This document shows, in pieces, positions 27,739 to 54,421 of a stretch of DNA of 64,000 nt. The position numbers and the translations under genes are program-made. Source of the DNA: Mytilus californianus (taxonomy: Eukaryota); contig NW_026262581.1 of NCBI RefSeq assembly GCF_021869535.1, forward strand, positions 74,958,001 to 75,022,000, in the 5' to 3' direction. How positions within the stretch are numbered: the stretch's first letter is position 1; each line of letters begins with the position of its first letter. The notes beneath the pieces were generated by a model. The model was not told the DNA's origin and did not search any database. It saw nothing but the letters and a program-made list of their open reading frames with translations.

Positions 27739-28170
27739 TGACGTCAAAAAAGCACCTTTAACCTTGACGTTATATACACGTGGTTATCGAACCTCGATTT
27801 GACTGAAAGTAACGTCTAAATTCCGCCATAAAAAGACAGAGAAAAAAGTTGTAATTTTTGTCATTTAATGTAGGTATTTTTTAACATTGTAAACTATCAA
27901 CAATACTTAATGGTATCTGCAAAGTACATATTGTGATGAATCAATATGTCAAACTGTACATTCATGATGATGTGTGCCTAAAGAAATCTTGCTAGACGAA
28001 ATTAAATTTCTGGAAATAAACATGTAGAATATGGGCGGGATATAAACAAAGCAATGGCGATACATCGATAAATTCCTATCTTATTATTATATTAAAGATA
28101 CATGTAGAATTCCTGTTTATTATACATTGTAGTTATTTTCGCGGCTGACTGAAGCAGAAAACTTGTAAGT
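27739..28170 (+). promoter_or_regulatory. Candidate promoter and non-coding first exon of the Dmrt-like gene
   Basis: TGACGTCA (27739-27746), CACGTG (27776-27781), GGCGGGA followed by TATAAA (28034-28046), and consensus donor GTAAGT (28165-28170). The DM1 exon has an acceptor 1 nt before its ATG, so an upstream exon is expected. Confidence 0.35.
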
Positions 28171-28782
28171 TGTATGTATAAATGTAAGACAGTGAAAAGA
28201 AAGAATTGGGAGGGGCTTTACCATCGAATATATAATATATAACAACTAACCAAGTGCTTGTGCAGTACACAGGTATGATCAGTAACAAATGGTTAAATAA
28301 GAGACTCATGCAGACAATTCAGGAGAAGGAACAAAAGGGCTATTTTTGATCCCTGGAATCCATGCAACCTGGCTAAACAGAATCCAATAAGTGATTGTAA
28401 GCACAGGAGCGTGGATATATATAGTTTGGATTTTTTTTTCATTGTTTGCACTGAATATATTCAATTTTCCATGAAATATTTGCCACTGGACATTAAGGAA
28501 CCAATAACTGAATAAGCAATAAATCAAAACATTGAGTCTAGTCAAATAATGTTGAAGACATTTAAAACAAATAAACTGCAAAGTAAATTATTTTTACTGG
28601 TGAATTATTGAAAAAATATGTTTTTTTTCAACCACTTTTAAAATGTATCTTATTATTGTGTCTGTTGTTCAAACAAAAATAATAAAAAAATCCAATATTA
28701 AATTACAAAGAAAAGGAGATCAGATGTGGGGTAAACAATGCAAGCATCTTAGATTTTTTCTTTTAATCAAAATTTTGGAAAG

Positions 28783-31900: not shown

Positions 31901-32184
31901 TTGCCATATGATTTCCTTGGTGGGCCAGAAGAATTTTTCTCTGACAGAATATTCTATTCACCCTTCTAGCCTGACTTATTTAGAGGCTAGGCAAAGCAGA
32001 GGATCACTTTTTTTCACTTTTGTACAAACTTTAATAATATCCTGCATTTTGTGGGGCAGAATATTAATTTTTATCTTATCTGGATCAAGAATATTTATTT
32101 TCACTTCTTACAAGGCCAACATATTCATTTCCAAACCCCTCCTATTTTCATTATAACAAGCAGTGTTATCTATTTTTTTTCCAG

Positions 32185-32435
32185 TATGCCTCCAGACTCT
32201 AAACAAAGACAAAGAGAATGTCAAAAATGTCTTGCTCATGGTGTCCATGTTAGATTCAAAGGTCACAAGTTTGGATGTTTTTTTCGTGACTGTCAGTGTC
32301 AACGATGTCAGGTTGTTAGTATAAAACGCCAGAAAAACAAGTTAGTAACTGCTCAGAAAAGACGACTAGAAATGGATAAAGTAAAAAAATTCGAAACAGA
32401 ACAAGCAAATGGGAAAGGAAGTGGAGAAATCTCGG
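32185..32435 (+). CDS. Dmrt: Dmrt-like exon with DM domain 1
   Basis: tttttttccAG|tATG: MPPDSKQRQRECQKCLAHGVHVRFKGHKFGCFFRDCQCQRCQVVSIKRQKNKLVTAQKRRLEMDK...GEIS|GTaata. All 8 Zn ligands in C-x2-C-x2-H-x8-H-x3-C-x4-C-x-C-x2-C spacing. Confidence 0.92.
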
Positions 32436-35400
32436 GTAATATTCTAAGAATAAAAGTAAGATAATTAGATTGTGTTACCTGCTGATGGCAATGGGTAAAA
32501 GCTGTTAGTTACTGGGAAGGAAATATAAATCAGGCAGGCTTCCCCAGAATCAGTTGTTGTTTATCAAGGAATTTAACTTTTTGCATATTTTTAGTGAACG
32601 GTCCCATTGAATAAATACAAAAGCTATTGTTGTCTTTGGAGTTCTTTCTGACAGTTGGAACTTTAAAGTTCTCCTTGGAAAACCAATAATTCATTTATTA
32701 ATTTGGCTGAACTAAAAATAAACTCCTACTGATGAAAATACATATACCAATAAGGACCTGTTCAAAACTGCATGTGATGTTGTATTTATTTAATATCAAC
32801 TAATTTATAAATGTAAACTGTAATAACAGTCTGTTGTTTATACTTGGTTACTAGATTGTATGAGGGAAATATTGACTGCATTGTTAACTCACCTTTAGTT
32901 TGCTCACTATAACCATAATAAACTGATATAATTTTGCAATATGTTCCATTTAAAGCAAAACTGCCTACAGAACCTTTCCCCTTAAATATGTACAAAAGTT
33001 TAATTTTTCAATATGTTCAATAATAACCAAAACAAAGTGAATTTCTGGTATTATGAGAAATTTGTAATGTTCCTGAGTTATTTTGTGACCTCCAAATTAT
33101 CTTAAAATTAGGTACCAATGATTAGGCTGTCCTGAATTTATTCTATGTGTAACATCAATAATAACCCTATAGTTTTGGGAAACAAATGAAAAATAAATAA
33201 ACAATATTAAACAGATGTTTCCTTTCAGAAAATGAGAAATTGACTGGTCTTTCGAACACAAAGACATTTTTCAAACAATGGTCACCCATTTTGATAAGAA
33301 ATTTCAGCTGTTTTGTTATCATTCTTTTGAAATATTAGGTATTATTACTGGACCTCTTAGCTAAGTTTAGCCGCATGAGATGCTATATATTAAATGTTTG
33401 GGGTTTTTTCTTTGTTTATCACTTTTCTCTTTCCCTCTAAGGTTTTGCATGATTTAATTAAAGTTAAAAAAAATTCAAATTGGGACAGCATTTCTATGAA
33501 TTTAGAAGGCCATTTCTTGTGAATCTGTACAAAATGAAGTTCCTGTACATTCATCCATCAGGGGTCCTTCCATCTGGCCTTGTAAACGCACTCACATGCA
33601 CAGTTCTTGCCATATTTTTATCAAACTTATATCAGAGGTTTATATTAGCAATGTCTTAGACAAGTTCGAAAATCAGTGCAGATCAAATATATTTAAAAGA
33701 GTTATATACCCTTGGATATATTAATTTTCAAACCTACATTTATATCCTATTTCTAGACAAATTTAAATATAAAAATTATAGCATCTTTAAAATGAATGAC
33801 TATACTTGTTGGGGAACACAAAAAAAATCCTGTAATTTAAAGTAGATTTTTTTTCAAATCAAACAAAAGGAATAATCATAAAAAATGATTTTCTATTTCT
33901 AAATGACTAATTCCTCAACAGAAGTCTGGTGACTTAAACATTTTGGTGATTTTCATGACTTCCAAGTGGAGATAACTCTAGATAAATTTAGTGAAAATTA
34001 AGTGATTCATCATTTTCTTTTAAAACTTTTACTTGTTAGCTGCCAATGATAGAAAAAATATTCATTAGTTTATGCTGATTAATTTTTAGATATATTGCCT
34101 GTAAATAACCTCTATTGGAGTAGTGTCTTCAGATTAATTGTTGATTTGGTTTAGATTTATAAAGATCTATTCTTTATATGTAACTGGAGTGCATGATTCT
34201 TATTAGAAAATCACATTGTCTCCTCCAGGACTCAAACCCAAGATCTCTGTTCCAAGTCGGTGCTCTAACCGACAGAGCTTAAGAAGAAATTCCCTAGCTC
34301 GATTACTGCCTAAAGCTGGCTAAGTATCTACTACTCATGGGAAGCAATCCTGTCACGCATAAGATGCGACAGTATCTGAGTTTCACAATAGTTAAAACTT
34401 GCATTCATAATTTTAGAAGTGATTTTCCTTCACAAAATATTGGCAATTGCATTATATAGACCTCAGGTTTTTACCAGTTATCACAGTGGGAAATCTAGTG
34501 GCTGAGAACAATAGAAAATTCACTCTTCTTGTGAAGAAGTCGAGAAAATCAATAATAAAACAATGCCTGTCAGGATCAAAATTTTTTTTTGAACAACAAG
34601 CGTAAAATTTAAAGAAATTATTTGTTAAACTGTGTTTTTAGAAATATACATGCAAATACACAATGTTTAATGTTCAGTATAGATTTAGATTATAAATTGC
34701 ATTAGAAGCTTGTGAAACTGAAAAATGAAAAATGTTAATCTTTGACTGCATATTAATAAAACAAATTGAAAAAGAAAACATGCACATACTAGATTAAATC
34801 TAAAGACCTTTCAGGCCACCAATTTTGAATTGTTCCCCAAAGTCCTTATTGCTGCATGTTACAATTTCCCAAAATTTACCTATTTTTCACATCAAAGTTT
34901 TTCAACTATACCAGTCTGCTCTTGTCAACTACACAGAGAACAATAGCTATTGTATTTATTCAATGGGACACTAGAACTGACAAAAGTTTAAATACCTTAC
35001 CAAGAGGAGATGATTCTATGGAAAAGTTTCATTTGGTTCGCAATAATCTTTGTTGCATATCAATCGATTCCTTTGGAATTTTTCCTGAAATTCTCTGATC
35101 TAGCTGCATACATATACAGATAATTGCCATGTTCCAGAGAGGTATACAGCCAGTAGAAAAATAAATTGAAATTGTTACTCCAGCAATATTTTAAACCAAT
35201 TTTACACCAAGCTCCTATAGCCTGCTGTATTTGTCATTTGCCATTTCAAGGGGGAAATCGGAGGTGGATTTAGGGGGTGGGGCCCAGGGTGGGTCCGGGC
35301 ACCCTGGGCCCCACCCACTAATTTCTGAATTTACAGTATTTAAAGGGGGAAATCGGAGGTGGATTTAGGGGGTGGGGCCCAGGGTGCCTGGACCCACCCT

Positions 35401-38400
35401 TTAGTGGGAAAAATTTGGTTGATTATATAGGAAATCACTGAGGCATGACTGGAGCTGGCCCCCTCTTAGGCAGTCAGTGGGCCCGCCTTATGACAATTTC
35501 TGGATCCGCCACTGGAAATGTTAACAATAAATGGAGATTTTGTTTTTATTCTAATTTATTTTTATTTTTACTATAACAAGAACGTTTTCTCTTGAATTTA
35601 TAATTGATAGTGTCCTTGCTAAAACAGGACAAACATTGAAAAGATCAAGTTTTCAGTGTTTAATACAGGGGAGGTAATATTTTGTCACTAGATTTCCCAC
35701 TGAATCGGTGATTCACAATAACAAATGCTCCCATTTAACGGCATTAATTTCTGAATTTACAGTATTTACAAATGATTACAGGTAAAAGTATGAAATCATA
35801 TGAGGCAAACACGCATGTGGCAATATCCAATTCAACAAAACTATAACGTACAACATCTTGAGATCACTGCGTGGTCTACAAATGCTAATACTCAAATACA
35901 ATCGAGCAAGTTCAAGAAGGCCCTGCAATCAGCAAAAAAAAATAAATAGTTAAATACCACATTATTATTGTTGAATAAAGGCAAGTTTTATTGTATACAA
36001 AAGTGTGTAAAAAAATGCCAAATTTTACCCACAATTTGCAACATCATATGAACCTCAAAATGAGAAGCCTTAAACTCTAATATGACAGCAAAAATTTCAT
36101 AAAGTATTTGAAGATTTTTTAATCTATTTGTAGATTCAGAAGAAAACCAGTTAATAATTGATGAGAGTAGCAATCAACAACAAATTCAATTATCTGACAG
36201 AAGAGCTGTATATTGCCGTAGATGTCAGATCCATGGCGTTAAAAATCTGGTGCGTGGACACAAGGATAGCTGTCCATACAGAGGTTGTTGGTGCACAGAG
36301 TGTAGAATAATAAGTAAGTCTTAATAGAAAATGGTTCTGTTCAAAGAATAGATTCCATAATAGACTTAAACTTCTGTTATTAAGGTTTTTGCTATAAAAA
36401 CTGGATACCAAATCATACCATAGATAACTTATAATACATCAACAGCCAAAAGCCAACTTATCCAAGACAGTCATTCCCAAGGTCGCCGGACATTGGACAA
36501 AGACCAGTAAAAATTGGTTTGGTCCAGTTAAGTGATATGCATTACTGGACCAAATGATCAGTAAAATTTTTAATTTTGTCCAAATCATATGTGTAAATGT
36601 CCTGTAATTAATAAAGAGTCTGGTCCAGTTAAAAAGAATTGAAATGTCCAGTTGATTTCTCAAAGCCTTGGGAACCACTGCCAAGAGTGAAAACGTGTAA
36701 TCAGACAATCTATAAAAACAACCAATAAACAATTGTTCTCAGTACTCTCCAGACCATGGGGTACATATTAAAATAGAGTAAAAAAGAACTGCAAACTAGA
36801 TGACTTATTAACTTAGAAGCAAGATGTGGCATACAATTTGGAAATCATGTTCAAAATCTTCTTGTTTACAGGTAGTTAATATGATATAGCTATTTGTTTA
36901 AAACTAATATTCCAGAATACATTATTATAGACAACAAGGCTAGTATGACACCCTAATTCATTATCAGATTTGCATAAATGCTCAATATTTATATCACAGC
37001 GATATAGCCTTTTTGTGCTGATGCGGCGTAAAGGAATCACCAATCAATATTTATATACATTTGTACATGTAAATTAATTTTTCAATAAGGCAAAAAAAAA
37101 TAATACATGCGTTTCTGTGATGTGCTGAAAAAAATAGGGTAGGTAGGAAGGCAATATCATTTTATTTCACAAACATTTTTTAGCTGGTTACTACTAGGGA
37201 ATCAGTCTGACTTTAACAGTGCTTGTTCCAAAATGGCATAAAAAGTGTAAGGGTAGGTAGGGTTAGCAGAAACATATGTTTTATTTTTTTTGGCCAAATA
37301 TATGATCATTATATTTTTCAGATTCTCAGTCCTCTGTGTGTAGCCACTGTGGATTTTATCCACCAGTTACACCCTATCCACGACCATACCCACCATCACT
37401 TAATTGGGTAAGTTTGTATTCATGTATTATGTGAAAATCTGTTTATTTCTTCCCATATTAATCATTATGGGTAAAGGCTGTCCATATTTCTGACTTAGGC
37501 TTGCTGTCTATCTGTTTTCTATTACAAAATATATAGTTGACATTAATGACACTAGCATGGTACCAAACTTTACAGAAAAACCTCATTCCAGATATAGAGA
37601 ATTGCAAGCACCATTCTAGTTTAACCTTCCCATGACAATAGTCATAGATAGGGAATTAGGCTGGCTGTTTCTTGTGTTGGTAATGTCAACAAACATAAAT
37701 AAGATAATTAGGTAACATAGGCAAGACATATCTCTGTGTTTTAAAACAGTTTTTTGAGGTTTCTCATTTCAAAACAGAAACTGTCCTTTCTAGTTACATT
37801 TTGCAATACTTTCAAACTACACCTTGAATGCAAAGCACTCACTAAATGGATTTTATGGATGGATTTAAATCGGAATAGAACTAAATTTGTATAGATAAGT
37901 CAGCCAAAAACTTACACAGCATTCTTTCTTTGTTTTAATATTCTACAGGATATGACATCTTCATGAATATTATAACTCTTTATTGTTGTATCCTTGCAGA
38001 GCAGGTTTCAAGATTAACTGATTGCCCAGGACAAGTAAAATCATTCTTAAGCAACCAAAAGCTGCAATGTACTTGTCCAAAATAAAATAAGAAATAATCT
38101 TGTCTAAAGATATGGTTCCACTAAAGAATAGGGTTGGTAGGTAGGATATTTTTTATCTTTTAACTTTAATTTCTTATTGACAATAGATTTTAAAAAAGTA
38201 TCGCTGAAACTTCATTATTATTTGAATAAACACCTCTTTCACAGTAACTTAAGTGAGTTTGATACCTTTATGAAAAATGAGTTTTAATTTTTTAAACAGT
38301 TGCTGCATCAACAGAACAATACAGCATGTGGAGGAGGTAATGTAATCAATGATTTTGTTTGCCTTATTTAATATGTTTAAATATCAAGCTGTAATATTTA

Positions 38401-41400
38401 AATAGATTGATTGATTAATGTTTAATGCCACTTTCAGCACTATTGGCTATTTACTGGCGGTCAGTTTTTATAGGTGGAGGAAGATTTTTATTGGTGGAAG
38501 AAGCTGGAGTGCTCACAGAGAACCACCGACCTTCGGCAGGAAAACTGACAATCCAAGTCAGTTAAGATTAGAGTTGAATTCACCTGCCACGTACAGGGTT
38601 CAAACTCACAACCTTATAGTGTTGACAGTCTTTATATTTTAAAAAATGTTTGTCATATTTAATTCTAATTTTAACATATTTTACAAATTACAATGAATTT
38701 TCACATATTTGCATTTTCAGAATGAATATTGAAGTACAAAAGTTTTTACTTTTACACCTGCACCTTTTTTGTTTGGGTGTTGCTATTATGAAGAGTACAT
38801 TTTCTAATAAGTGACTAGTTTTTTTTGCAAAGGGTTTTTGTAAATGGATTAAACACAGTTATATAGGAAAAGCTTTGGTTCCTTATCTATACAATGCAAA
38901 TGGCACATGCAAGCATAATGTATTGTCCTAGATTTGATCTAATTTTGACTCTGTAAGTGCATCATACATTCATGGTAAACAGGCATTGTGAAATCAGTAG
39001 GTTATTAGGGACCTAAAATTCTTAGCAGCTTACATTATAACCATTATCCTATATGTGCTTCTTCCATAAGAAATTGAAAGATTTTACATACAAGTTATCT
39101 CCATTTTCAAAAAATTCTGAAGTTTTATAGAAACTACTCAAAAGTTATCTACCTTTACAAAATATTCTAAAATTTTATAGAAACCATTCAAAAGTTATCT
39201 CCCTTTGCAAAAAATTCTGAAGTTTTACAGAAACCCCTCAAAAGTTATCTACCTTTACAAAAATTCTGAAGTTTTATTGAAACCATTCAAAAGTCATCTA
39301 CCTTTACAAAAATTCTGAAGTTTTACAAAAACCCCTCAAAAGTTATCTACCTTTACAAAAATTCTGAAGTTTTATAGAAACCCTTCAAAAGTTACCTACC
39401 TTTACAAAAATTCTGAAGTTTTATAGAAACCCCTCAAAAAATTATCTACCTTAACAAAAAATTCTTAAGTTTTATAGAAACCCCTCAAAAGTTATCTACC
39501 TTTAAAAAAATTGTGAAGTTTTATACAAACCCCCCAAAAGTTATCTACCTTTACAAAAATTCTGAAGATTTATAGAAACCCCTCAAAAGTTATCTACCTT
39601 TACAAAAATTCTGAAGTTTTACAGAAACCACTCAGTTATATACCTTGACAAAAAATTCTGAATTTTTTATAGAAACCCCTCCAAACTTATCTCCCTTTGC
39701 AAATATTCTGAAGTTTTATAGAAACCCCTCACAAGTTATCTACCTTTACAAAAATTCTGAAGTTTAATAGAAATCACACAAAAGTTATCTACCTTTACAA
39801 AAAATTCTGAAGTTTTATAGAAACCCCTCAAAAGTTATCTACCTTTACAAAAATTCTGAAGTTTTATAGAACCCCCTCAAAAGTTATCTACCTTTACAAA
39901 AATATTGAAGTTTTTAAGAAACCCCTCAAAAGGTTATATACCTTAACAAAAAATTCTTAAGTTTTATTGAAACCATTCAAAAGTTATCTCCCTTTGCAAA
40001 AAATTCTGAAGTTTTATAGAAACCCCTCAAAAGTTATCTACCTTTAAAAAAATTCTTAAGTGTCATACAAACCCCCCAAAAGTTATCTTCCTTTACAAAA
40101 ATTCTGAAGTTTTATAGAAACCCCTCAAAAGTTATCTACCTTTACAAAAATTCTGAAGTTTTATAGAACCACTCGGTTATCTACCTTGACAAAAAATTCT
40201 GAAGTTTTATAGAAACGCCTCAAAAGTTATCTCCCTTTGCAAATATTCTGAAGTATTATAGAAACCCCTCAAAAGTTATCTACCCTTACAAAAATTCTGA
40301 AGTTTAATAGAAACCCCTCGAAAGCTACCTACCTTTACAAAAATTCTGAAGTTTTATAGAAACCCCTCAAAAAGTTATCTACCTTTACAAAAAAATTCTG
40401 AAGTTTTATAGAAACCACTCAGTTATCTACCATAACAAAAAATTCTTAAGTTTTATAGAAACCCCTCAAAAGTTATCTACCTTTACAAAAATTCTGAAGT
40501 TTTACAGAAACCACTCGGTTATCTACCTTGACAAAAAATTCTGAAGTTTTATAGAAACCCCTCAAAAGTTATCTCCCTTTGCAAATATTCTGAAGTTTTA
40601 TAGAAACCCCTCAAAAGTTATTTACACTTACAAAAATTCTGAAGTTTTATAGAAACCCCTCAAAAGTTACCTACCTTTACAAAAAATTCTGAAGTTTTAT
40701 AGAAACCACTCAGTTATCTACCTTAACAAAAAATTCTTAAGTTTTATAGAAACCCCTAAAAAGTTATCTACCTTTACAAAAATTCTGAAGTTTTAAAGAA
40801 ACCACTCGGTTATCTACCTTGACAAAAAATTCTGAAGTTTTATAGAAACCCCTCAAAAGTTATCTACCTTTAAAAAAAATCTTAAGTTTTATAGAAACCC
40901 CTCAAAAGTTACCTACCTTTACAAAAAATTCTGAAGTTTTATAGAAACCACTCAGTTATCTACCTTAACAAAAAATTCTTAAGTTTTATAGAAACCCCTC
41001 AAAAGTTATCTACCTTTACAAAAATTCTGAAGTTTTAAAGAAACCACTCGGTTATCTACCTTGACAAAAAATTCTGAAGTTTTATAGAAACCCCTCAAAA
41101 GTTATCTACCTTTAAAAAAATCTTAAGTTTTATACAAACCCCCCAAAAGTTATCTACCTTTACAAAAATTCTGAAGTTTTATAGAAACCCCTCAAAAGTT
41201 ATCTATCTTTACAAAAATGCTGAAGTTTTACAGAAACCCCTCAAAAGTTATCTACCTTTACAAAAATTCTGAAGTTACAAGAAACTCCTCAAAAGTTATC
41301 TACCTTTACAAAAATTCAGAAGTTTTATAGAAACCACTCAGTTATCTACCTTAACAAAAAATTCTGAAGTTTTATAGAAACCCCTCAAAAGTTATCTACC

Positions 41401-44400
41401 TTTACAAAATTTCTGAAGTTTTACAGAACCCCTCAAAAGTTATCTACCTTTACAAAAATTCTGAAGTTTAATAGAAACCCCTCAAAAGTTATCTACCTTT
41501 ACAAAAATTCTGAAGTTTTATAGAAACCACTCAGTTATCTACCTTAACAAAAAATTCTGAAGTTTTATAGAAACCCCTCAAAAGTTATCTACCTTTACAA
41601 AAAATTCTAAAGTTTTATAGAAACTACTCAAAAGTTATCTAACTTTACAAAAATTCTGAAGTTTTATAGAAACCCCTCAAAAGTTATCTACCTTTACAAA
41701 ATTTCTGAAGTTTTACAGAATACTCAAAAGTTATCTACCTTTACAAAAATTCCGAAGTTTAATAGAAAACCCTCAAAAGTTATCTACCTTTACAAAAATT
41801 CTGAAGTTTTATAGAAACCACTCAGTTATCTACCTTAACAAAAAATTCTGAAGTTTTATAGAAACCCCTTAAAAGTTATCTACCTTTACAAAAATTCTGA
41901 AGTTTTATAGAAACCCCTCAAAAGTTATCTACCTTTACAAAAAATTCTAAAGTTTTATAGAAACTACTCAAAAGTTATCTAACTTTACAAAAATGCTGAA
42001 ATTTTATAGAAACCCCTCAAAAGTTATCCAACTTGACAAAAAATTCTGAAGTTTTAAAGAAACCCCTTAAAAATTATTTCCCTTTGCAAAAAATCTTAAG
42101 TTTTATAGGAGTAATACCACCAATATTTTCCCCCTATTAGTCTTTGTTAAATTCTCATTTTTATTTTTTTTTAAATTGTGCAGAATTTATCTTTGTTTCA
42201 AATATTAAAGAAATACTTGGCATGAGTGAAGTTTGATCCTGTCCAGACTACTACAGTCAAAATTTCACATAACATTTCATTGCATATAAGATAATAACCA
42301 TCACTGGAAGTTAACCAATCAAATTTTTTTCCCCTTTTTTTCCTGTTTAGTAACCATGCCACCTCAAGTTTCCAAAATATTTTATAGAAACACTTAATAT
42401 AAAAAAAATCTTTGAATCACCCAAGATATATGTTTATGACTCAGAATTTTTTTTCTGCAATGAAATGCATGTAACGAGGTTTAATTTCCTACAACTGTCA
42501 AATTCAAGGGAACATTTTTTTTCTACCCTTTTTCATATGAAACAGGATGTGACGAACAATGTTTTGGTGGTATTACTCCTTAAAGAGACCACTTAAAAGT
42601 TATCTCCCTTTGCAAAAATTTCTAATAATGGAAACAGTTAGTATTTGAATATAGACTTTTGAAATACCTGGAAATCTAGCCTTCTTTCATATGTCTTGTG
42701 TGATAGGTCAACAATACATGGTAGGTTAATTGTGAGGGGTTTAAATGTTCATCTGAGATACTTCATTTATGACTTTGACCTTATTTACACATACAAGTGG
42801 TCAGATTAAGATAAAATAAGGAGATATGGCATGATTGCCAATGAGACAACTATCCACCAGAGACTAAATGATGTAGATTTTATTTATTAAGTATAGATCA
42901 CCATACAGCCTTTAACAATGAGCAAAACCCATAATTCATGGCAAGCTTATAAAAGGCCCCAACAGGACAAAATGTAAAACAACTCGAACGAGAAAAAATC
43001 AACAACCTGATTCACGATCACGATTCACTGATTGTACGATAAACAAATATGATATGTAGCAACAAACAACAACCACTGAATTACAGGCTTCTGACTTGGG
43101 ACAAACGCATACAGAATTTGGCGAGGTTAAACAAGTTTTTGGATAGACCAACCGCCTTTAACTTGGGACAGTGGTGTAACAGCACAACATAAGAATAATT
43201 ATAAGTTGAAAAGGGCTTGACTCATCATTATTATCATAAGTTTAAGGATTATGTCTGTAACTTGACATGAAAGGTCATGATATTTTGTGTATGAATTAGT
43301 TTTAAAAGAATATACACAGCTGACCTGTGATAAGGGTTAGACCTTTTTTAACCATAATATTTGTTTATTTTCGCACAGAAATTCTCGGGGTTCGTCCAGT
43401 CTTGTATGCACTCTCACAAGTACAATTCTCCCTAGATTTTTATCAAATCTTTATAAGTGGTTTATATCTGCATTGTTTCTGACAAGTTAGAAAATCAGTG
43501 TCCATTAACTATTTTTTAAAAGTTGTGCCCCTTGGAAATATTAATTATATGTGTATGGGAAATTGCATTGCAAGTGCTCTCACATGTACAGTTCTTTTTT
43601 TATCAAAGGTTTATATCAGCAATGTCTTGAACAAATTGGAAAATCAGTGCAGATCAACAATTGTTTAAAGAGTTAGACTCCTTGGAAATATAAGTTATAT
43701 CAAGGATTTGTATCAAATCCTTGTTTATATGTAAAATTGCATTGTAAGTGCTCTCAAGCCTATATTTCTTGTAGGACTGTTATGAAATTAATATTGAAGA
43801 TTTAAGTCAGCAATGTCTGTTACAAGCTTGAAAATCAGTGCAGATGAATTATTTGTTCAGAAGTTATGTCCATTAGAAATGTAAATTCTATAGAAAATTG
43901 CATTGTAAGCGCTCTCCCGTGTACAATTCTTGCCTGGTATTTCAAAGGTTTACATCAGCAATGTTTATGACAAGATTGAAAATCAGTGCTGATCAATTAT
44001 TTTTAAAAGAGTAATGCCCCTTGGAAATATTAATTATATGGAAAATTGCATTGTAAGCGCTTTCATGTGTACATTACAGTAACAATTCTTACCATCTTCT
44101 TTTATCAAAGGCATATATATCAGCAATGTCTTGTACAAGTTCAAAAGTCAGTGCCCATCAACTATTTTTTAAAGAGTTATGCCACTGGCACTTGGAAATT
44201 TTAATTGTATGTAAAATTGCATTGTTAATGTTCTCAAGCCTTCATTTCTCTAAGGTATTTATAAAAAAAAATATTAAAGAACAAAAAAATTTTTTTTTTT
44301 TTTAGTTCTAGCCATTGGGCAGATGAAATATGTACAATGTGGGGGACATTTGAACTCTGTTCTTTTATTAATCTTTCAAGTAGTCTATCCATCTGTATTA

Positions 44401-46628
44401 ATAAGAGTGACAAGTCATCAATTTTTGGTATAGCAATTTAATGTCCTTCAGACATGTCAGTACTGAAACCTCTACATCAATTTCACACACTTATGGTCAG
44501 GTGATATTTACAGGTTTAAATAATAGAAGGCTTCCTCCAAGTAACCATACATGAGGTCTGGAATAAATTATTGTTGTTGAAAGAATATGTCATTCTGGTT
44601 ATGTCATCTGGTCTTGCCCAAGCTCATATATATTCATTTTCCTGTGCTCAGTATATGTTTATGCTCAATCTAGGATAGTCAGGTGGGGGGAAGCATTATG
44701 TTTTCTGGCCTGTACATCTGTCCTTCTGTTTGTGCATTAGTCCATCCTGAGTATCAGGTTAAAGTTTACCAAGAAGTTGTTGTCTCCTTGATTTGAAACT
44801 TTGTACACATAATCATTATGATAATATTCTTTCAGGTAATACCAGTTCATCTAACTATAGCAGCAATCTTGGATACAAATCACAGGTGTGTAAAACAAAA
44901 ATCTTGTGAATATAACTTGATTGCTAAACATGATAATGTCATTAACCTTTTTCTACTGCATTAGGGCCTAAGCCGTAAAAAATACACAGTAGTCAATTAA
45001 CCTGTTAAAGAGGTAAATCATAATCTTTTCATGTGAGTGATGATGTGACCTATAAAGCATCATGAATAAATTTAAGATGTGGAATAAAAGTCATTAAGAA
45101 AGCAACCTAATGACAAAAAAAAATTAGTCATGGAGAGAACGGAAACTAAAAATTTTGTAATTTTTCCATTTATAAAGGGGCAGAACTCTAGAAGGGTTAA
45201 AGTGACACCTCCAAAATTCAATCTTGATCTGTGTTTTGTGGAAATAAGCATTGTGTATAAGTTTCATAACATTTGGTTGAGGCAAACTCAAGTTAGAGAA
45301 CGGAAACCAATTTTAGGACGTACGGACAATGCCCCCTCCGCTACGGCGGGGGCATAAAAACACCTAGAAATGAGCATAAAGTCTTCAACAAAAGACAGGG
45401 GACTATAGAATATATGTCAAGCTCTAAACATCCTGAGTCTAATAATAATATTCAATAAGATGAACAGAAACAACCTATCACAGGTCTGCCATCACCACCA
45501 AATTTTCTAAAGATATAACATGAATCATCCACTGATAGGCTCCCTGACCTGAAACAGGTACACAAATTTATATGGGGTTCAAGTTTTTTTGAAAGAAAGT
45601 TCATGAAATCTCCACCCTCCTTCTTAAATCTTGATAAGAAACATGAAAACACTAAAATAATGTTATTTTTGACATTAAAAATACTTAGTCTAGTACAAAC
45701 AATCTAATGCACAATTCTTTTTTCAATTTACTATATTGAATTTTTTATGAATATTTATTTGTTCTGTCTTAAAATAAGAAGTTGCAGTAAAGTCAAGTTT
45801 GTCTTTTAGTAACTCCAGTTAAAATTAACCAGTGAAGCATAACCATATAAGCCATCAAAGAGTCACACTTGATTTAAAAAACCATTCTAAGTAAAGAGCT
45901 GGATTTTACATGTCTGTTCATTCTGTATTAGCCTTTCAACATATGAATATTAAGAAATGTTGTTTAAACATCATTAATACTGCACATTGAACAAAACAAT
46001 AAGATAATAAAATACAGTCCATATTTCAAACTGACTGCATTTACTTGAATGATAAATATTCTTCATTGTCATTCTGTCACTTGTGAAACAAACAATTATT
46101 ACATGTACAATGTACTAGCTGCTTATTATTAAGTAGTGCCCATGGAAGATGATATAAAAAAATCAAAAACTGATACTATTTTCCTTGTATTTACTTATGA
46201 ATTTCTTAATCAGAATTATTATCTTCATAGAGATTCAATTTAATAAAAAAAGTTTGAAGCAGTAAACAATATCATTGACACCAGTGCATGTGTATCTCAG
46301 TCACTAGTAAGACATATATGAAATTTCTAGGAGTTTCTGAAATAAAGCAGTTAAAGCAGTCACAGAATTCTTTGATAAAGATCTTTATAAAACTTTACAC
46401 TGACTTTTCTTGCTTAGCTTTAGTTATACATCTATTCATTTATTTATAAATAAGATATTATATAAAGTTGACCATTTATTATAGGTAAATTATGTTCAAC
46501 CAGCTAACCTTAGCCTGCCATATAATTCTACCCCAGGATACATGCAGGGACCACAACATGATATACCACATTCAACTGTACCATATGAAACTCCAGCTAG
46601 TCAACAAGATGGAAACTTGAGTCTGTAG
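32186..46628 (+). CDS. Dmrt: Divergent Dmrt-family transcription factor with two DM zinc modules, about 248 aa
   Basis: join(32186-32435,36134-36313,37322-37407,38300-38336,44836-44885,46485-46628) = 747 nt, all GT-AG, phases 1,1,0,1,0 compatible. The two DM exons are secure; the chain of short 3' exons is inferred from splice sites, phase and P/Y/S/Q composition. Confidence 0.75.
34219..34283 (-). mobile_element. tRNA-derived SINE head relic
   Basis: Minus strand taagctctgtcggttagagc (A-box-like) and gggtttgagtcc (B-box-like); too degenerate for a tRNA gene. Confidence 0.6.
35248..35514 (+). mobile_element. GC-rich MITE with a rearranged, duplicated 5' end
   Basis: Ends in ctggatccgccactg. 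The 44-bp 5' segment is duplicated (35248-35291, 35343-35386) around an inverted copy and an ectopic 24-mer. Confidence 0.65.
36134..36313 (+). CDS. Dmrt: Dmrt-like exon with DM domain 2 (zinc module only)
   Basis: atttgtAG|(D)SEENQLIIDESSNQQQIQLSDRRAVYCRRCQIHGVKNLVRGHKDSCPYRGCWCTECRII|GTAAGT, 180 nt, phase 1-1; all 8 ligands with DM spacing. Absent from the ORF track (no ATG). Confidence 0.9.
37322..37407 (+). CDS. Dmrt: Dmrt-like exon 3 (Pro/Tyr-rich)
   Basis: atatttttcAG|(N)SQSSVCSHCGFYPPVTPYPRPYPPSLNW|GTAAGT, phase 1-0. Confidence 0.75.
38300..38336 (+). CDS. Dmrt: Dmrt-like exon 4
   Basis: tttaattttttaaacAG|LLHQQNNTACGG|GTaatg, 37 nt, phase 0-1. Confidence 0.6.
38405..38630 (-). mobile_element. 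tRNA-type SINE with V/Meta-like central domain and (AATC)n tail
   Basis: Minus strand B-box-like gagtttgaaccc, central ggtcggtggttctctgtgagcactccagcttcttccaccaataaaa, tail read as gattgattgatt on +. A 3' fragment of the same family lies at about 37000-37048 (+). Confidence 0.65.
39060..42107. repeat. Intronic satellite, about 60 monomers of 47-50 bp
   Basis: Consensus aaaagttatctacctttacaaaaattctgaagttttatagaaacccctc (49 bp), with recurrent variants and more degenerate edges. Confidence 0.95.
42108..42579. mobile_element. Non-autonomous DNA transposon (Kolobok-like) inserted in the last satellite monomer; second copy at 49901-50372
   Basis: TIR ggagtaataccaccaa / ttggtggtattactcc; right flank TTAA, left flank TATA; satellite monomer resumes on the right. 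Kolobok elements have RR termini and TTAA TSDs. Confidence 0.65.
43390..44240. repeat. Five degenerate 150-190 bp HINE-type subrepeats (second copy at 51183-52033)
   Basis: aaaatcagtgc at about 43491, 43640, 43831, 43980, 44146; a related single unit at about 33590-33740. Confidence 0.75.
44836..44885 (+). CDS. Dmrt: Dmrt-like exon 5
   Basis: tattctttcAG|(G)NTSSSNYSSNLGYKSQ|GTgtgt, 50 nt, phase 1-0. Confidence 0.6.
45110..45360. mobile_element. HINE-like element end with GC-rich terminal hairpin (second copy at 52903-53153)
   Basis: ggacgtacggac followed by atgccccctccgctacggcgggggcat and an A run; explains ORF 45130..45357. Confidence 0.6.
46485..46628 (+). CDS. Dmrt: Dmrt-like terminal coding exon
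   Basis: ccatttattatAG|VNYVQPANLSLPYNSTPGYMQGPQHDIPHSTVPYETPASQQDGNLSL*, phase 0; P/Y/Q/S-rich; AATAAA downstream at about 46928 and 47004. Confidence 0.65.
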   Translation, partial: VNYVQPANLSLPYNSTPGYMQGPQHDIPHSTVPYETPASQQDGNLSL

Positions 46629-48761
46629 TCATGGCAACACAAGAAAGAAGGACCAAAGTTTTTTTTTATGACAGTTTCTCTTCATTTTCAATTTAGCAGT
46701 TGTATCAAAATCTCAAAATTGCATCCCTAGTCATGTATGGCTTAATTGAATTGTTAGAAATTCAAAATCAAGGACTTTCAAGGGATTTAAAGTACGATAT
46801 TTGAGAAATACAAAGTTACAAGATACACGTACAAAATTGATTTGATTAGTCTTATGCACATTTCATTACTCAAAAATATCCTAAGACCAATTAACTAAAA
46901 ATAATATGTGTAAAATAGACAATAGACAATAAAACTTCATAGACAATTTAGAAATTAATACAAACACCTTAAAAAAAATTTAAAAGTATATGACACATTT
47001 ACCAATAAAAAAGATGTATGTAAAAATTTAATGAAAAATGTTAATAATTAATAATTAGTTTACGAGAATTAAGATTAAATTGGCATAAGTGGAGAAATAT
47101 TATTTTGATGTTCAGAATGTTTCTCTAAATGATTTTTATTACTGATCATTAGTCAAACTCAATTCAGAGGTAAATAATTATAGCTCACTCTTGAAGCATA
47201 ATAATGAAGCTTGCTATTGTTGAGGGTGGGGGAAATATTGTTGGGAGTATCTGTCTAACTTATTACATTCCAATATTCAAATATACAAATTTCCATATCA
47301 GTCACATAGAACTTTTGAATGCCTTGAAAAAAATTATTTATACTTTGCATTATTATTGGCAAGCACCAGAGGATGTGTCTTGAATAACATTAGAATGCCC
47401 GTCTGCAAGTTCAAGGTGACAAACATATTGTTTAAAATACAAAAGTCAGGAGGACACATTTTTGAATGCCTGGAAAATTGACATTTTTGGTGCCCACCAC
47501 CAGGGAGAGTTTTGCAAATAAGTTGGAATTTTTGTCTGCAAGGTCCAGGTCACAAACTTCATTTAACTTTATATTCCTATATATTCAAATATACAAAGTT
47601 TTGTCTGATTTAGTACTTTTGAATGTCGACATTGATATTAATGATGTTTGATATGAATCATAGTTGTCCACCACCAGTGTATATGGTATCTTAATTTTAG
47701 TGTCTTTCACCCTCTTATTTGATACTGTATAGTTTATTATGCATTTTCAGGAATTATTAGCCCTTTCACCAGTTAATGAAATATCATAAAAGGCAAGAAA
47801 TTTTAATGTTCCATTTCTTGTATGGGGCGATAGTTTGACTCGTCATATCATATGATGCAATTTGAAAAATAGATAAGATAGGCAAAACTTGATGAATTTG
47901 ACATTGTTAAGAGTGCTTTCGAATCTTTTTCACTTTTACTCTTGGAAAAGATATATATTCCACTTCCATCATCAGAAATGGTACAATTACCGGTCTAAAT
48001 GAAAATCAAGATCATAATTTTAACTGCTATTATATATCATGTATATATACAACTAAATTGTTTCAAATGTTTGTGGGCTTAAAAACTAATATATGGAAAT
48101 GAAATTTACATATTTTACACCAGAAAAGGCAAACAATAAAAAAAGCATGAGTTCTAAATAATATGTGAATTAATATAATGGTAGCGAAATGAAAAAACAA
48201 AAATAATGAAAGTGAGTTTGTTTTTCGTGAACAAATAGACTTGATGACTTTATATGAAATATAATTTCAAAAAAAAATTTATGATTAGGTGTATAATTTA
48301 TATGCATGCTGGATATATTTTTAAACCCAGAAATTGTAATCTATAGAAAGTTTTAATGGTATGAATTGTTCCCATGCATGATATGAGCAAATATATATTA
48401 GCAATACTTAATTATGTATTAATTTTATTTTATCTAATCCAAGGAATGGATTTTAATATTGAATTTTGATTAAGTGATGATTTTGTTAATAATTGTTGAA
48501 TGAAATTTGTTTCTTTTGAATAAAATGAAAAAAGTAGACCTTTTGTCTCTTTAATTTACAAACCTCTTTGGTTTCAATTAATGGTAGGTATCTACAGGAT
48601 CACAGCGATCATTGTTACAATTAGAATTCTACACATTCAAAAGAATTAAGATGACAGAATGGCAGCCATTTTAATACTGATTACACTTCATCAACCTTTG
48701 TTAAATCCTCGAGAAAGTTTTCCAGGCCCTGTATGGTAATACATTTATATTTATTTGTCGT

Positions 48762-49900
48762 AAAAAAAATCTTAAGTTTTATAGAAACCCCTCAAAAGTT
48801 ACCTACCTTTACAAAAATTCTGAAGTTTTAAAGAAACCACTCGGTTATCTACCTTGACAAAAAATTCTGAAGTTTTATAGAAACCCCTCAAAAGTTATCT
48901 ACCTTTAAAAAAATCTTAAGTTTTATACAAACCCCCCAAAAGTTATCTACCTTTACAAAAATTCTGAAGTTTTATAGAAACCCCTCAAAAGTTATCTATC
49001 TTTACAAAAATGCTGAAGTTTTACAGAAACCCCTCAAAAGTTATCTACCTTTACAAAAATTCTGAAGTTACAAGAAACTCCTCAAAAGTTATCTACCTTT
49101 ACAAAAATTCAGAAGTTTTATAGAAACCACTCAGTTATCTACCTTAACAAAAAATTCTGAAGTTTTATAGAAACCCCTCAAAAGTTATCTACCTTTACAA
49201 AATTTCTGAAGTTTTACAGAACCCCTCAAAAGTTATCTACCTTTACAAAAATTCTGAAGTTTAATAGAAACCCCTCAAAAGTTATCTACCTTTACAAAAA
49301 TTCTGAAGTTTTATAGAAACCACTCAGTTATCTACCTTAACAAAAAATTCTGAAGTTTTATAGAAACCCCTCAAAAGTTATCTACCTTTACAAAAAATTC
49401 TAAAGTTTTATAGAAACTACTCAAAAGTTATCTAACTTTACAAAAATTCTGAAGTTTTATAGAAACCCCTCAAAAGTTATCTACCTTTACAAAATTTCTG
49501 AAGTTTTACAGAATACTCAAAAGTTATCTACCTTTACAAAAATTCCGAAGTTTAATAGAAAACCCTCAAAAGTTATCTACCTTTACAAAAATTCTGAAGT
49601 TTTATAGAAACCACTCAGTTATCTACCTTAACAAAAAATTCTGAAGTTTTATAGAAACCCCTTAAAAGTTATCTACCTTTACAAAAATTCTGAAGTTTTA
49701 TAGAAACCCCTCAAAAGTTATCTACCTTTACAAAAAATTCTAAAGTTTTATAGAAACTACTCAAAAGTTATCTAACTTTACAAAAATGCTGAAATTTTAT
49801 AGAAACCCCTCAAAAGTTATCCAACTTGACAAAAAATTCTGAAGTTTTAAAGAAACCCCTTAAAAATTATTTCCCTTTGCAAAAAATCTTAAGTTTTATA
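48762..49900. repeat. Second, shorter array of the 49-bp satellite (start of duplicate copy 2)
   Basis: Matches 40978-42107, except that the first unit matches the variant at 40871-40927. Confidence 0.95.
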
Positions 49901-52628
49901 GGAGTAATACCACCAATATTTTCCCCCTATTAGTCTTTGTTAAATTCTCATTTTTATTTTTTTTTAAATTGTGCAGAATTTATCTTTGTTTCAAATATTA
50001 AAGAAATACTTGGCATGAGTGAAGTTTGATCCTGTCCAGACTACTACAGTCAAAATTTCACATAACATTTCATTGCATATAAGATAATAACCATCACTGG
50101 AAGTTAACCAATCAAATTTTTTTCCCCTTTTTTTCCTGTTTAGTAACCATGCCACCTCAAGTTTCCAAAATATTTTATAGAAACACTTAATATAAAAAAA
50201 ATCTTTGAATCACCCAAGATATATGTTTATGACTCAGAATTTTTTTTCTGCAATGAAATGCATGTAACGAGGTTTAATTTCCTACAACTGTCAAATTCAA
50301 GGGAACATTTTTTTTCTACCCTTTTTCATATGAAACAGGATGTGACGAACAATGTTTTGGTGGTATTACTCCTTAAAGAGACCACTTAAAAGTTATCTCC
50401 CTTTGCAAAAATTTCTAATAATGGAAACAGTTAGTATTTGAATATAGACTTTTGAAATACCTGGAAATCTAGCCTTCTTTCATATGTCTTGTGTGATAGG
50501 TCAACAATACATGGTAGGTTAATTGTGAGGGGTTTAAATGTTCATCTGAGATACTTCATTTATGACTTTGACCTTATTTACACATACAAGTGGTCAGATT
50601 AAGATAAAATAAGGAGATATGGCATGATTGCCAATGAGACAACTATCCACCAGAGACTAAATGATGTAGATTTTATTTATTAAGTATAGATCACCATACA
50701 GCCTTTAACAATGAGCAAAACCCATAATTCATGGCAAGCTTATAAAAGGCCCCAACAGGACAAAATGTAAAACAACTCGAACGAGAAAAAATCAACAACC
50801 TGATTCACGATCACGATTCACTGATTGTACGATAAACAAATATGATATGTAGCAACAAACAACAACCACTGAATTACAGGCTTCTGACTTGGGACAAACG
50901 CATACAGAATTTGGCGAGGTTAAACAAGTTTTTGGATAGACCAACCGCCTTTAACTTGGGACAGTGGTGTAACAGCACAACATAAGAATAATTATAAGTT
51001 GAAAAGGGCTTGACTCATCATTATTATCATAAGTTTAAGGATTATGTCTGTAACTTGACATGAAAGGTCATGATATTTTGTGTATGAATTAGTTTTAAAA
51101 GAATATACACAGCTGACCTGTGATAAGGGTTAGACCTTTTTTAACCATAATATTTGTTTATTTTCGCACAGAAATTCTCGGGGTTCGTCCAGTCTTGTAT
51201 GCACTCTCACAAGTACAATTCTCCCTAGATTTTTATCAAATCTTTATAAGTGGTTTATATCTGCATTGTTTCTGACAAGTTAGAAAATCAGTGTCCATTA
51301 ACTATTTTTTAAAAGTTGTGCCCCTTGGAAATATTAATTATATGTGTATGGGAAATTGCATTGCAAGTGCTCTCACATGTACAGTTCTTTTTTTATCAAA
51401 GGTTTATATCAGCAATGTCTTGAACAAATTGGAAAATCAGTGCAGATCAACAATTGTTTAAAGAGTTAGACTCCTTGGAAATATAAGTTATATCAAGGAT
51501 TTGTATCAAATCCTTGTTTATATGTAAAATTGCATTGTAAGTGCTCTCAAGCCTATATTTCTTGTAGGACTGTTATGAAATTAATATTGAAGATTTAAGT
51601 CAGCAATGTCTGTTACAAGCTTGAAAATCAGTGCAGATGAATTATTTGTTCAGAAGTTATGTCCATTAGAAATGTAAATTCTATAGAAAATTGCATTGTA
51701 AGCGCTCTCCCGTGTACAATTCTTGCCTGGTATTTCAAAGGTTTACATCAGCAATGTTTATGACAAGATTGAAAATCAGTGCTGATCAATTATTTTTAAA
51801 AGAGTAATGCCCCTTGGAAATATTAATTATATGGAAAATTGCATTGTAAGCGCTTTCATGTGTACATTACAGTAACAATTCTTACCATCTTCTTTTATCA
51901 AAGGCATATATATCAGCAATGTCTTGTACAAGTTCAAAAGTCAGTGCCCATCAACTATTTTTTAAAGAGTTATGCCACTGGCACTTGGAAATTTTAATTG
52001 TATGTAAAATTGCATTGTTAATGTTCTCAAGCCTTCATTTCTCTAAGGTATTTATAAAAAAAAATATTAAAGAACAAAAAAATTTTTTTTTTTTTTAGTT
52101 CTAGCCATTGGGCAGATGAAATATGTACAATGTGGGGGACATTTGAACTCTGTTCTTTTATTAATCTTTCAAGTAGTCTATCCATCTGTATTAATAAGAG
52201 TGACAAGTCATCAATTTTTGGTATAGCAATTTAATGTCCTTCAGACATGTCAGTACTGAAACCTCTACATCAATTTCACACACTTATGGTCAGGTGATAT
52301 TTACAGGTTTAAATAATAGAAGGCTTCCTCCAAGTAACCATACATGAGGTCTGGAATAAATTATTGTTGTTGAAAGAATATGTCATTCTGGTTATGTCAT
52401 CTGGTCTTGCCCAAGCTCATATATATTCATTTTCCTGTGCTCAGTATATGTTTATGCTCAATCTAGGATAGTCAGGTGGGGGGAAGCATTATGTTTTCTG
52501 GCCTGTACATCTGTCCTTCTGTTTGTGCATTAGTCCATCCTGAGTATCAGGTTAAAGTTTACCAAGAAGTTGTTGTCTCCTTGATTTGAAACTTTGTACA
52601 CATAATCATTATGATAATATTCTTTCAG

Positions 52629-52678
52629 GTAATACCAGTTCATCTAACTATAGCAGCAATCTTGGATACAAATCACAG
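52629..52678 (+). CDS. Dmrt: Duplicate of Dmrt-like exon 5
   Basis: Identical to 44836-44885, offset +7793. Confidence 0.45.
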
Positions 52679-54277
52679 GTGTGTAAAACAAAAATCTTGT
52701 GAATATAACTTGATTGCTAAACATGATAATGTCATTAACCTTTTTCTACTGCATTAGGGCCTAAGCCGTAAAAAATACACAGTAGTCAATTAACCTGTTA
52801 AAGAGGTAAATCATAATCTTTTCATGTGAGTGATGATGTGACCTATAAAGCATCATGAATAAATTTAAGATGTGGAATAAAAGTCATTAAGAAAGCAACC
52901 TAATGACAAAAAAAAATTAGTCATGGAGAGAACGGAAACTAAAAATTTTGTAATTTTTCCATTTATAAAGGGGCAGAACTCTAGAAGGGTTAAAGTGACA
53001 CCTCCAAAATTCAATCTTGATCTGTGTTTTGTGGAAATAAGCATTGTGTATAAGTTTCATAACATTTGGTTGAGGCAAACTCAAGTTAGAGAACGGAAAC
53101 CAATTTTAGGACGTACGGACAATGCCCCCTCCGCTACGGCGGGGGCATAAAAACACCTAGAAATGAGCATAAAGTCTTCAACAAAAGACAGGGGACTATA
53201 GAATATATGTCAAGCTCTAAACATCCTGAGTCTAATAATAATATTCAATAAGATGAACAGAAACAACCTATCACAGGTCTGCCATCACCACCAAATTTTC
53301 TAAAGATATAACATGAATCATCCACTGATAGGCTCCCTGACCTGAAACAGGTACACAAATTTATATGGGGTTCAAGTTTTTTTGAAAGAAAGTTCATGAA
53401 ATCTCCACCCTCCTTCTTAAATCTTGATAAGAAACATGAAAACACTAAAATAATGTTATTTTTGACATTAAAAATACTTAGTCTAGTACAAACAATCTAA
53501 TGCACAATTCTTTTTTCAATTTACTATATTGAATTTTTTATGAATATTTATTTGTTCTGTCTTAAAATAAGAAGTTGCAGTAAAGTCAAGTTTGTCTTTT
53601 AGTAACTCCAGTTAAAATTAACCAGTGAAGCATAACCATATAAGCCATCAAAGAGTCACACTTGATTTAAAAAACCATTCTAAGTAAAGAGCTGGATTTT
53701 ACATGTCTGTTCATTCTGTATTAGCCTTTCAACATATGAATATTAAGAAATGTTGTTTAAACATCATTAATACTGCACATTGAACAAAACAATAAGATAA
53801 TAAAATACAGTCCATATTTCAAACTGACTGCATTTACTTGAATGATAAATATTCTTCATTGTCATTCTGTCACTTGTGAAACAAACAATTATTACATGTA
53901 CAATGTACTAGCTGCTTATTATTAAGTAGTGCCCATGGAAGATGATATAAAAAAATCAAAAACTGATACTATTTTCCTTGTATTTACTTATGAATTTCTT
54001 AATCAGAATTATTATCTTCATAGAGATTCAATTTAATAAAAAAAGTTTGAAGCAGTAAACAATATCATTGACACCAGTGCATGTGTATCTCAGTCACTAG
54101 TAAGACATATATGAAATTTCTAGGAGTTTCTGAAATAAAGCAGTTAAAGCAGTCACAGAATTCTTTGATAAAGATCTTTATAAAACTTTACACTGACTTT
54201 TCTTGCTTAGCTTTAGTTATACATCTATTCATTTATTTATAAATAAGATATTATATAAAGTTGACCATTTATTATAG

Positions 54278-54421
54278 GTAAATTATGTTCAACCAGCTAA
54301 CCTTAGCCTGCCATATAATTCTACCCCAGGATACATGCAGGGACCACAACATGATATACCACATTCAACTGTACCATATGAAACTCCAGCTAGTCAACAA
54401 GATGGAAACTTGAGTCTGTAG
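54278..54421 (+). CDS. Dmrt: Duplicate of Dmrt-like terminal exon
   Basis: Identical to 46485-46628, offset +7793. Confidence 0.45.
   Translation, partial: VNYVQPANLSLPYNSTPGYMQGPQHDIPHSTVPYETPASQQDGNLSL

Follow-up and report, generated by a model that had tools for sequence, protein, structure and literature searches.

Gene structure, DM modules and surroundings of the two-DM Dmrt-1L locus of Mytilus californianus

The Dmrt-1L locus and its gene model

The stretch of DNA analyzed here consists of 64 kb of the Mytilus californianus genome (contig NW_026262581.1 of RefSeq assembly GCF_021869535.1, positions 74,958,001 to 75,022,000 of the forward strand; hereafter the window, with coordinates counted from its first letter). 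It contains a gene of the Dmrt family, Dmrt-1L (DMRT1L), which encodes two tandem DM zinc modules, referred to as DM1 and DM2. A six-frame regular-expression scan of the whole window for the DM ligand pattern returned exactly two matches, both on the plus strand, at 32219-32308 and 36214-36303. Coding exons were placed by tblastn of Mytilus proteins on the window and, together with transcript alignment, this gave a gene of seven exons, six of them coding, with GT..AG borders and pyrimidine-rich acceptors at the coding exons. The spliced six-exon translation is 248 amino acids (aa) long and is identical, residue for residue, to RefSeq XP_052068518.1 ('dmd-3-like [Mytilus californianus]'). An earlier note on this DNA, made from the letters alone, had given the 248-aa length and both end coordinates exactly. 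The window is also 100% identical over 20.4 kb to scaffold JAKFGE010000001.1 of GCA_021869535.1 (74,987,186-75,007,628). The exons of the gene are as follows.

27787-27869, plus strand: non-coding exon of the 5' untranslated region (5'UTR); donor gtaggt; joins the acceptor before 32185; situated 4.3 kb 5' of the ATG
32185-32435, plus strand: coding exon 1, DM1 zinc module and long basic helix; ATG at 32186; donor gtaata; ends in phase 1
36134-36313, plus strand: coding exon 2, acidic/Gln-rich linker and DM2 zinc module; 180 nucleotides (nt); phase 1-1; donor gtaagt
37322-37407, plus strand: coding exon 3, start of the Pro/Tyr/Ser-rich tail; 86 nt; placed by tblastn and transcript alignments
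38300-38336, plus strand: microexon of 37 nt, LLHQQNNTACGG; placed by protein and transcript alignments; skipped in one transcript
44836-44885, plus strand: coding exon of 50 nt; identical second copy at 52629-52678
46485-46628, plus strand: last coding exon, with the stop codon at 46626-46628; identical second copy at 54278-54421

The 5'UTR exon was located with transcript contigs L002, L009, L007 and L008, which align at 27787-27869 and then jump to 32185, the first base past the AG acceptor that receives this exon. The loose end of a further RNA contig, X1, at 32185 matches 27840-27869. One of the contigs, L007, has ∼100 extra 5' bases with a weak (69%) match to 28125-28277, which suggests a putative alternative 5'UTR exon. 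Coding exon 1 matches residues 1-83 of XP_052068518.1 at 100%, coding exon 2 stops three residues past the last Cys of DM2, and the 3'UTR extends to at least ∼47000. The gene spans 14.4 kb in M. californianus, 6.3 kb in Mytilus edulis and 16.8 kb in Mytilus coruscus, and most of this difference is due to the intron that carries a 49-bp satellite.

Two DM domains in one spliced product

To characterize the two modules, the translations were searched against the Pfam DM profile PF00751, whose gathering cut-off is 27 bits. The DM1 exon scored 43.9 bits (E 2.2e-11, profile positions 1-43 of 47) and the DM2 exon 44.6 bits (E 1.3e-11, profile positions 1-37 of 47), while the whole 248-aa protein scored 73.9 bits over two stretches. 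All eight zinc ligands are complete in DM1 and in DM2, and the splice from exon 1 to the DM2 exon is in frame (phase 1/1). Thus the full CCHC/HCCC set that the earlier note had assigned to each of two exons, spliced in frame, was recovered by the regular expression, the profile and the intron phases, and its 248-aa model passed the PF00751 search that it had proposed. The same note had reported that both modules lack the CARCRNHG and ERQRVMAAQVALRR signature and that the C terminus has no DMA domain. The sequence bears out the former, and the Pfam search of the 248-aa protein agrees with the latter, as it returned DM matches only, with no DMA, Dmrt1 or Dsx-dimerization domain.

RNA contigs place the two modules in a single polypeptide, as does the Pfam result on the spliced model. 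Four Logan contigs (SRR13891794, -96, -88 and -97; 977-1176 nt) carry uninterrupted open reading frames (ORFs) with 98-99% identity in the coding exons and follow the path 27787-27869, 32185-32435, 36134-36313, 37322-37407, (38300-38336), 44836-44885 and 46485 onward. The X1 contig (1720 nt, depth 56.6) has joints 32433>36133 and 36313>37322 and then runs into microexon sequence; the one-letter offset at its first joint is a synonymous G>T at 32434. All five RNA contigs therefore join DM1 to DM2 and to coding exon 3 at GT..AG sites, and the transcript joining both DM exons that the earlier note had predicted is found in them as well as in the identical RefSeq model. Contig L009 (SRR13891797) skips the 37-nt microexon, and the resulting frameshift leaves a product of 189 aa in which both DM modules are retained. 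A 189-aa Logan protein, P0158, was considered as a form without DM2 and was rejected, as it is the microexon-skipping form and retains DM2.

Assignment to Dmrt-1L and the published record

A phmmer search of the full library with the DM1 exon matched only 368 proteins at E <= 0.001, which indicates that DM1 is highly divergent. The top match is a 189-aa M. edulis protein, CAG2232556.1, 90% identical; its name, 'DMRT2', is a misnomer relative to the curated Dmrt-1L assignment. Clustering at 90% groups XP_052068518.1 with proteins of 248-249 aa from M. coruscus (CAC5397186.1), M. trossulus (XP_063448513.1) and M. edulis (XP_071133376.1), and the same cluster also holds three transcript-assembly proteins and the M. 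edulis 'Dmrt 1L' QWY93919.1. In RefSeq the Mytilus members carry the names 'dmd-3-like' or 'dmd-10-like'. In the catalog of Nicolini et al. 2025, however, the present protein is listed in Table S6 as 'Mcal XP_052068518.1 Dmrt-1L', with DM as main and additional domain (PMC12530298). This published listing, together with the 90% cluster shared with QWY93919.1, places XP_052068518.1 in the curated Dmrt-1L group.

The protein and its double-DM layout are therefore already known, both in RefSeq and in the published gene catalog. The earlier note had allowed that a catalog entry for a double-DM bivalve Dmrt would speak against novelty; Table S6 contains such an entry for XP_052068518.1 (PMC12530298), and the gene is not new. 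Its description of a divergent, DMA-less, MAB-3-like double-DM candidate sex regulator is supported here, and the same picture has been published for mytilid DMRT1L. The suspicion that annotation may miss DM2 was right for M. edulis CAG2232556.1 and wrong for RefSeq XP_052068518.1, in which both DM domains are annotated.

Nicolini et al. place Dmrt-1L in the top 5% for amino acid divergence and propose it as a primary sex determinant; among molluscs they report an extra DM domain only for Mytilida and one gastropod (PMC12530298). In the genome paper of the golden mussel (Limnoperna fortunei), mytilid DMRT1L has two DM domains "like MAB-3" and is expressed with a male bias (PMC10541798). An earlier preprint had already reported a two-DM transcript that is male-biased and has MAB-3 as its top Swiss-Prot match (bioRxiv 10.1101/818757). 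In M. edulis, DMRT1L is male-biased by reverse transcription quantitative PCR and decreases under estrogen exposure (PMC11470919). Comparison with the Mytilida Dmrt-1L proteins (QWY93919.1, CAC5397186.1 and L. fortunei ENSLFOG00000002085) reveals no difference at the level of family membership. The other Mytilus proteins are 90-99% identical to that of M. californianus, and the group has in common with it two DM domains, no DMA domain, high divergence from other Dmrt classes and IPO9 downstream. Oyster and scallop Dmrt-1L (Crassostrea gigas, Patinopecten yessoensis) belong to the same curated orthology group (PMC12530298) but have one DM only. They are male-biased gonadal regulators, and knock-down in the oyster blocks male gonad differentiation (cited in PMC10541798, PMC11470919).

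Dmrt-1L is at present the foremost candidate for a primary gene of male sex determination or differentiation in bivalves. The exact locus, exons and splicing given here for M. californianus are thus a useful confirmation and do not constitute a new kind of gene. What this analysis adds is the helix stub of DM2, the apparent absence of a sister relation between DM1 and DM2, the skipping of the microexon and a 7.8-kb duplication at the 3' end of the gene.

DM2 is conserved and is predicted to have only a stub of the recognition helix

To examine the anatomy of the two modules, the protein was modeled with AlphaFold2 on an alignment of 37 sequences. The mean predicted local distance difference test score (pLDDT) is 62, with the DM modules at 84-94. 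In the model, the DM1 zinc module (residues 11-38) is followed by a 36-residue recognition helix (39-74), both at pLDDT ∼90. The recognition helix is absent from DM2, whose zinc module (110-137) is followed only by a 9-residue helix (138-146). The remainder of the protein, including the Pro/Tyr/Ser/Gln-rich tail, is disordered. DM2 is thus predicted to be a zinc module with a mere stub of the recognition helix. The sequence agrees with this prediction because the exon ends three residues past the last Cys and is directly followed by NSQSSVCSHCGFYPPVTPYPRPYPP, so that a Pro-rich disordered tail comes after the short helix.

Despite the stub, 35 of the 36 residues of DM2 are the same in all five Mytilus species compared, and no other segment of the protein reaches so high a share. 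A more distant relative was found in Logan contig L003 (SRR26215656, 2178 nt, genomic-like), whose DM1-exon DNA is ∼70% identical. This contig carries both DM exons, separated by ∼700 nt, and retains the intron phases, the exon ends and the donor after CRII seen in M. californianus. A hand count on the alignment gives ∼79% identity for the DM2 zinc module versus ∼67% for DM1 and its helix. Judged by its conservation in the five Mytilus species and in L003, DM2 is clearly a functional module.

Sequence matches in the PDB lead from DM1 to the DMRT1 crystal structure 4YJ0 and from DM2 to the Dsx nuclear magnetic resonance structure 1LPV. A Foldseek search of the whole model against the PDB returned only Dsx 1LPV (E 0.18, probability 0.99), which is consistent and adds little. 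Vertebrate DMRT1 and insect Doublesex are thus the sole PDB matches by sequence and fold, and they share the zinc-module fold and ligand spacing with the mussel protein. The latter, however, lacks the CARCRNHG and ERQRVMAAQVALRR motifs, has no Dmrt1, Dsx-dimerization or DMA domain, and is not an ortholog of either.

DM1 is a complete DM domain, with intertwined CCHC/HCCC ligands and a long basic helix, and by analogy with DMRT1 and Dsx would likely be the sequence-specific DNA-binding unit. Because of its short helical stub, DM2 probably does not bind DNA in the manner of a full DM domain. It more likely assists DM1, through extra DNA contacts, dimerization or partner binding, and the tail may serve as a low-complexity effector region. 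By orthology with the mussel, oyster and scallop genes, the protein is most likely a gonadal transcription factor that promotes maleness in opposition to FoxL2. Our current hypothesis, which we hold at roughly 90%, is that the locus is the Dmrt-1L gene of M. californianus and encodes a likely male-promoting gonadal transcription factor in which DM1 reads DNA and DM2 is accessory.

We infer the DNA binding, the way in which DM1 and DM2 would divide their labor and the role in males of M. californianus, which are of a different standing from the directly observed domains, exon structure, splicing, catalog identity, conservation and synteny. Several points weigh against this hypothesis. The functional reading of DM2 draws on a medium-confidence model from a shallow alignment (mean pLDDT 62). 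The spliced contigs all come from close relatives (∼98-99% identical), perhaps from one study, and their proteins match M. coruscus. Lastly, in a raw RNA run from M. californianus itself (X15, ∼6% of reads; tissue and sex unstated), exons 1-3 had zero depth, and over 32000-37999 the reads matched just intronic repeats at 34.8-35.7 kb, and those only in part. The X15 result neither supports nor refutes expression of Dmrt-1L.

Relation to MAB-3 and the origin of the two-DM layout

Outside the mussels, the best phmmer matches to DM1 are nearly all two-DM proteins, many of which carry CQRCLNHG...KGHK...MVEQRRQLNN. This is the MAB-3-type first-DM motif that the earlier note had given. The nematode origin of these matches is deduced from their motifs, with one related match (Bursaphelenchus) named by its source. 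Like the mussel protein, MAB-3/DMD-3-type proteins are short, lack DMA and carry two DM domains in tandem, and their CQ(R/K)CL.HG...KGHK and R-R-Q-x-N-x-L helix motif are colinear with mussel DM1. The MAB-3-like proteins rank near the top of the phmmer search (E 1e-14 to 1e-9), with identities of only ∼35-42%. They differ from the mussel protein in having a full helix after both domains (second: ...RR.LMA.QIKLRR). The analogy with the MAB-3 layout therefore stands for the two tandem DMs and the first-domain motif and fails for DM2, which has no long recognition helix. Since DM2 is conserved yet helix-less, the MAB-3 analogy of the literature is only partial.

A second group of matches carries CRKC.../CRRCRNH...WKGHKK motifs, and its sampled members are flatworm proteins. 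Second domains of flatworm two-DM proteins (Paragonimus KAF5402289.1, Mesocestoides A0A5K3FHJ2, Cichlidogyrus KAL3318115.1) are the best matches to mussel DM2, with CRRCRNH...WKGHKK.CPYR.C.C..C.LI, 41-43 bits, up to 49% identity and likewise a non-canonical tail. The flatworm proteins are much longer than the mussel protein, and the relation is one of short-domain scores.

To place the two modules, 230 DM domains were cut from the phmmer matches, a set that was picked by likeness to DM1 and is hence biased. A maximum-likelihood tree of these domains (55 columns) left 127 of 225 branches unsupported and gave no supported placement of DM1 or DM2, with DM2 on a long branch beside an unrelated GC-rich protein (P0070). 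For these reasons the tree was rejected as evidence of orthology. In the published phylogeny, Dmrt-1L is mollusc-specific and nematode genes intrude via divergence artifacts (PMC12530298). Orthology to MAB-3 is thus unsupported both by the DM-domain tree and by this phylogeny. Two further searches were made. A word-based homology search with the M. edulis protein and the DM2 region, a method that does not reach other mytilid genera, found only the Mytilus cluster, and an ESM Atlas search with the DM2 region yielded nothing but generic DM clusters, all scoring under 0.85.

One account of these data is that the layout is ancient and shares its origin with the layout of flatworm and nematode MAB-3-type proteins, the second module having been lost in oysters and scallops. 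In its favor, the best non-mussel matches to DM1 carry two DM stretches almost without exception, DM1 has the K/R-R-Q-x-N-x-L helix motif in common with MAB-3-like first domains, DM2 favors second domains (those of two-DM proteins, with flatworms in front, make up 17 of its top 20), and the proteins sampled for the CRKC.../CRRCRNH...WKGHK motifs are from flatworms. However, the match set is biased toward DM1, the best matches of DM1 mix first, second and single domains with no preference, the tree offers no supported placement and leaves DM2 on a long branch, and the published phylogeny attributes the nematode intrusion to divergence (PMC12530298). We regard this account as doubtful, and homology of the two-DM layout across phyla as a low-probability possibility. 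A fuller version, which seems to us unlikely, takes DM2 not for a recent copy of DM1 but for an old zinc module without a helix that descends from a two-DM male regulator of ancestral protostomes, is shared with flatworm and MAB-3-type proteins and was lost in oysters and scallops; on its symmetric exon it could in principle be included or skipped, which would adjust the activity of the factor.

Alternatively, DM2 could have arisen recently in mytilids as an internal copy of the DM1 exon, so that the likeness to the MAB-3 layout would be pure convergence. The confinement of an extra DM among molluscs to Mytilida and one gastropod (PMC12530298) fits this account, as does a tree without resolution. 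Yet DM2 ranks only 210th among the 230 domains for DM1, and DM1 155th for DM2, with 25-28 bits as compared to 40-46 bits for foreign domains. Because the two modules rank so far down each other's lists, they do not appear to be each other's closest kin and a recent internal duplication is improbable. The preference of DM2 for second domains, those of flatworms in the lead, speaks against it as well, and the Pomacea case, if orthologous, points to an older origin.

That the locus holds two adjacent single-DM genes, or that DM2 is a decaying pseudo-exon outside the mRNA, is very improbable: CAG2232556.1 does run from the DM1 exon directly to the exon past DM2, and omission of the symmetric DM2 exon (180 nt, phase 1-1) would leave the frame intact, but a DM2-skipping isoform was sought among the five RNA contigs and found in none (0/5), the DM2-less protein is on record from one genome annotation and from no transcript contig, and the conservation of DM2 within Mytilus and in L003 argues against a pseudo-exon. 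The hypothesis of a single Dmrt-1L gene with an accessory DM2 is retained.

Surroundings of the gene and the 3' duplication

The gene IPO9 is called downstream on the opposite strand, and hence convergent, in the M. edulis and M. coruscus loci. In the window, 62225-62721 matches the 3' end region of M. coruscus IPO9 at 90% in DNA. IPO9 is therefore a conserved convergent downstream neighbor in Mytilus, as the synteny proposed in the earlier note would have it.

The 49-bp satellite lies in the long intron of Dmrt-1L at 39092-42108 (∼62 copies) and again at 48763-49901 (∼23 copies), with 86-87% matches. Open frames run through it in several phases, and it explains why GC skew is strongly negative at 40-42 kb. 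Self-alignment of the window revealed a large repeat:

40966-48765 and 48761-56558, no strand assigned: 7.8-kb block in two head-to-tail copies, 99.95% identical (2 mismatches and 2 gaps)

The block begins within the 49-bp satellite and holds the last two coding exons and the 3'UTR. A second copy of the last two exons was looked for within 10 kb downstream in M. edulis (L005) and M. coruscus (L006), and none was found, which indicates that the tandem block arose by a very recent duplication or else is an artifact of the assembly. This part of the reference needs validation ahead of any use of the locus for sex linkage or copy number.

The intron between DM1 and DM2 is repeat-derived at 34800-35800, where depth is very high in every RNA run (up to ∼1350 word depth at 35400-35599). 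Most of the reads match in part only, and the segment is thus probably an abundant transcribed transposable element family. Elsewhere in the window, three long ORFs were judged by eye: a reverse-transcriptase fragment (7497-8249, minus strand), an EGF-like cysteine-rich exon (16330-16680, plus strand) and the ORF of a Penelope-type element (24024-24719, plus strand).

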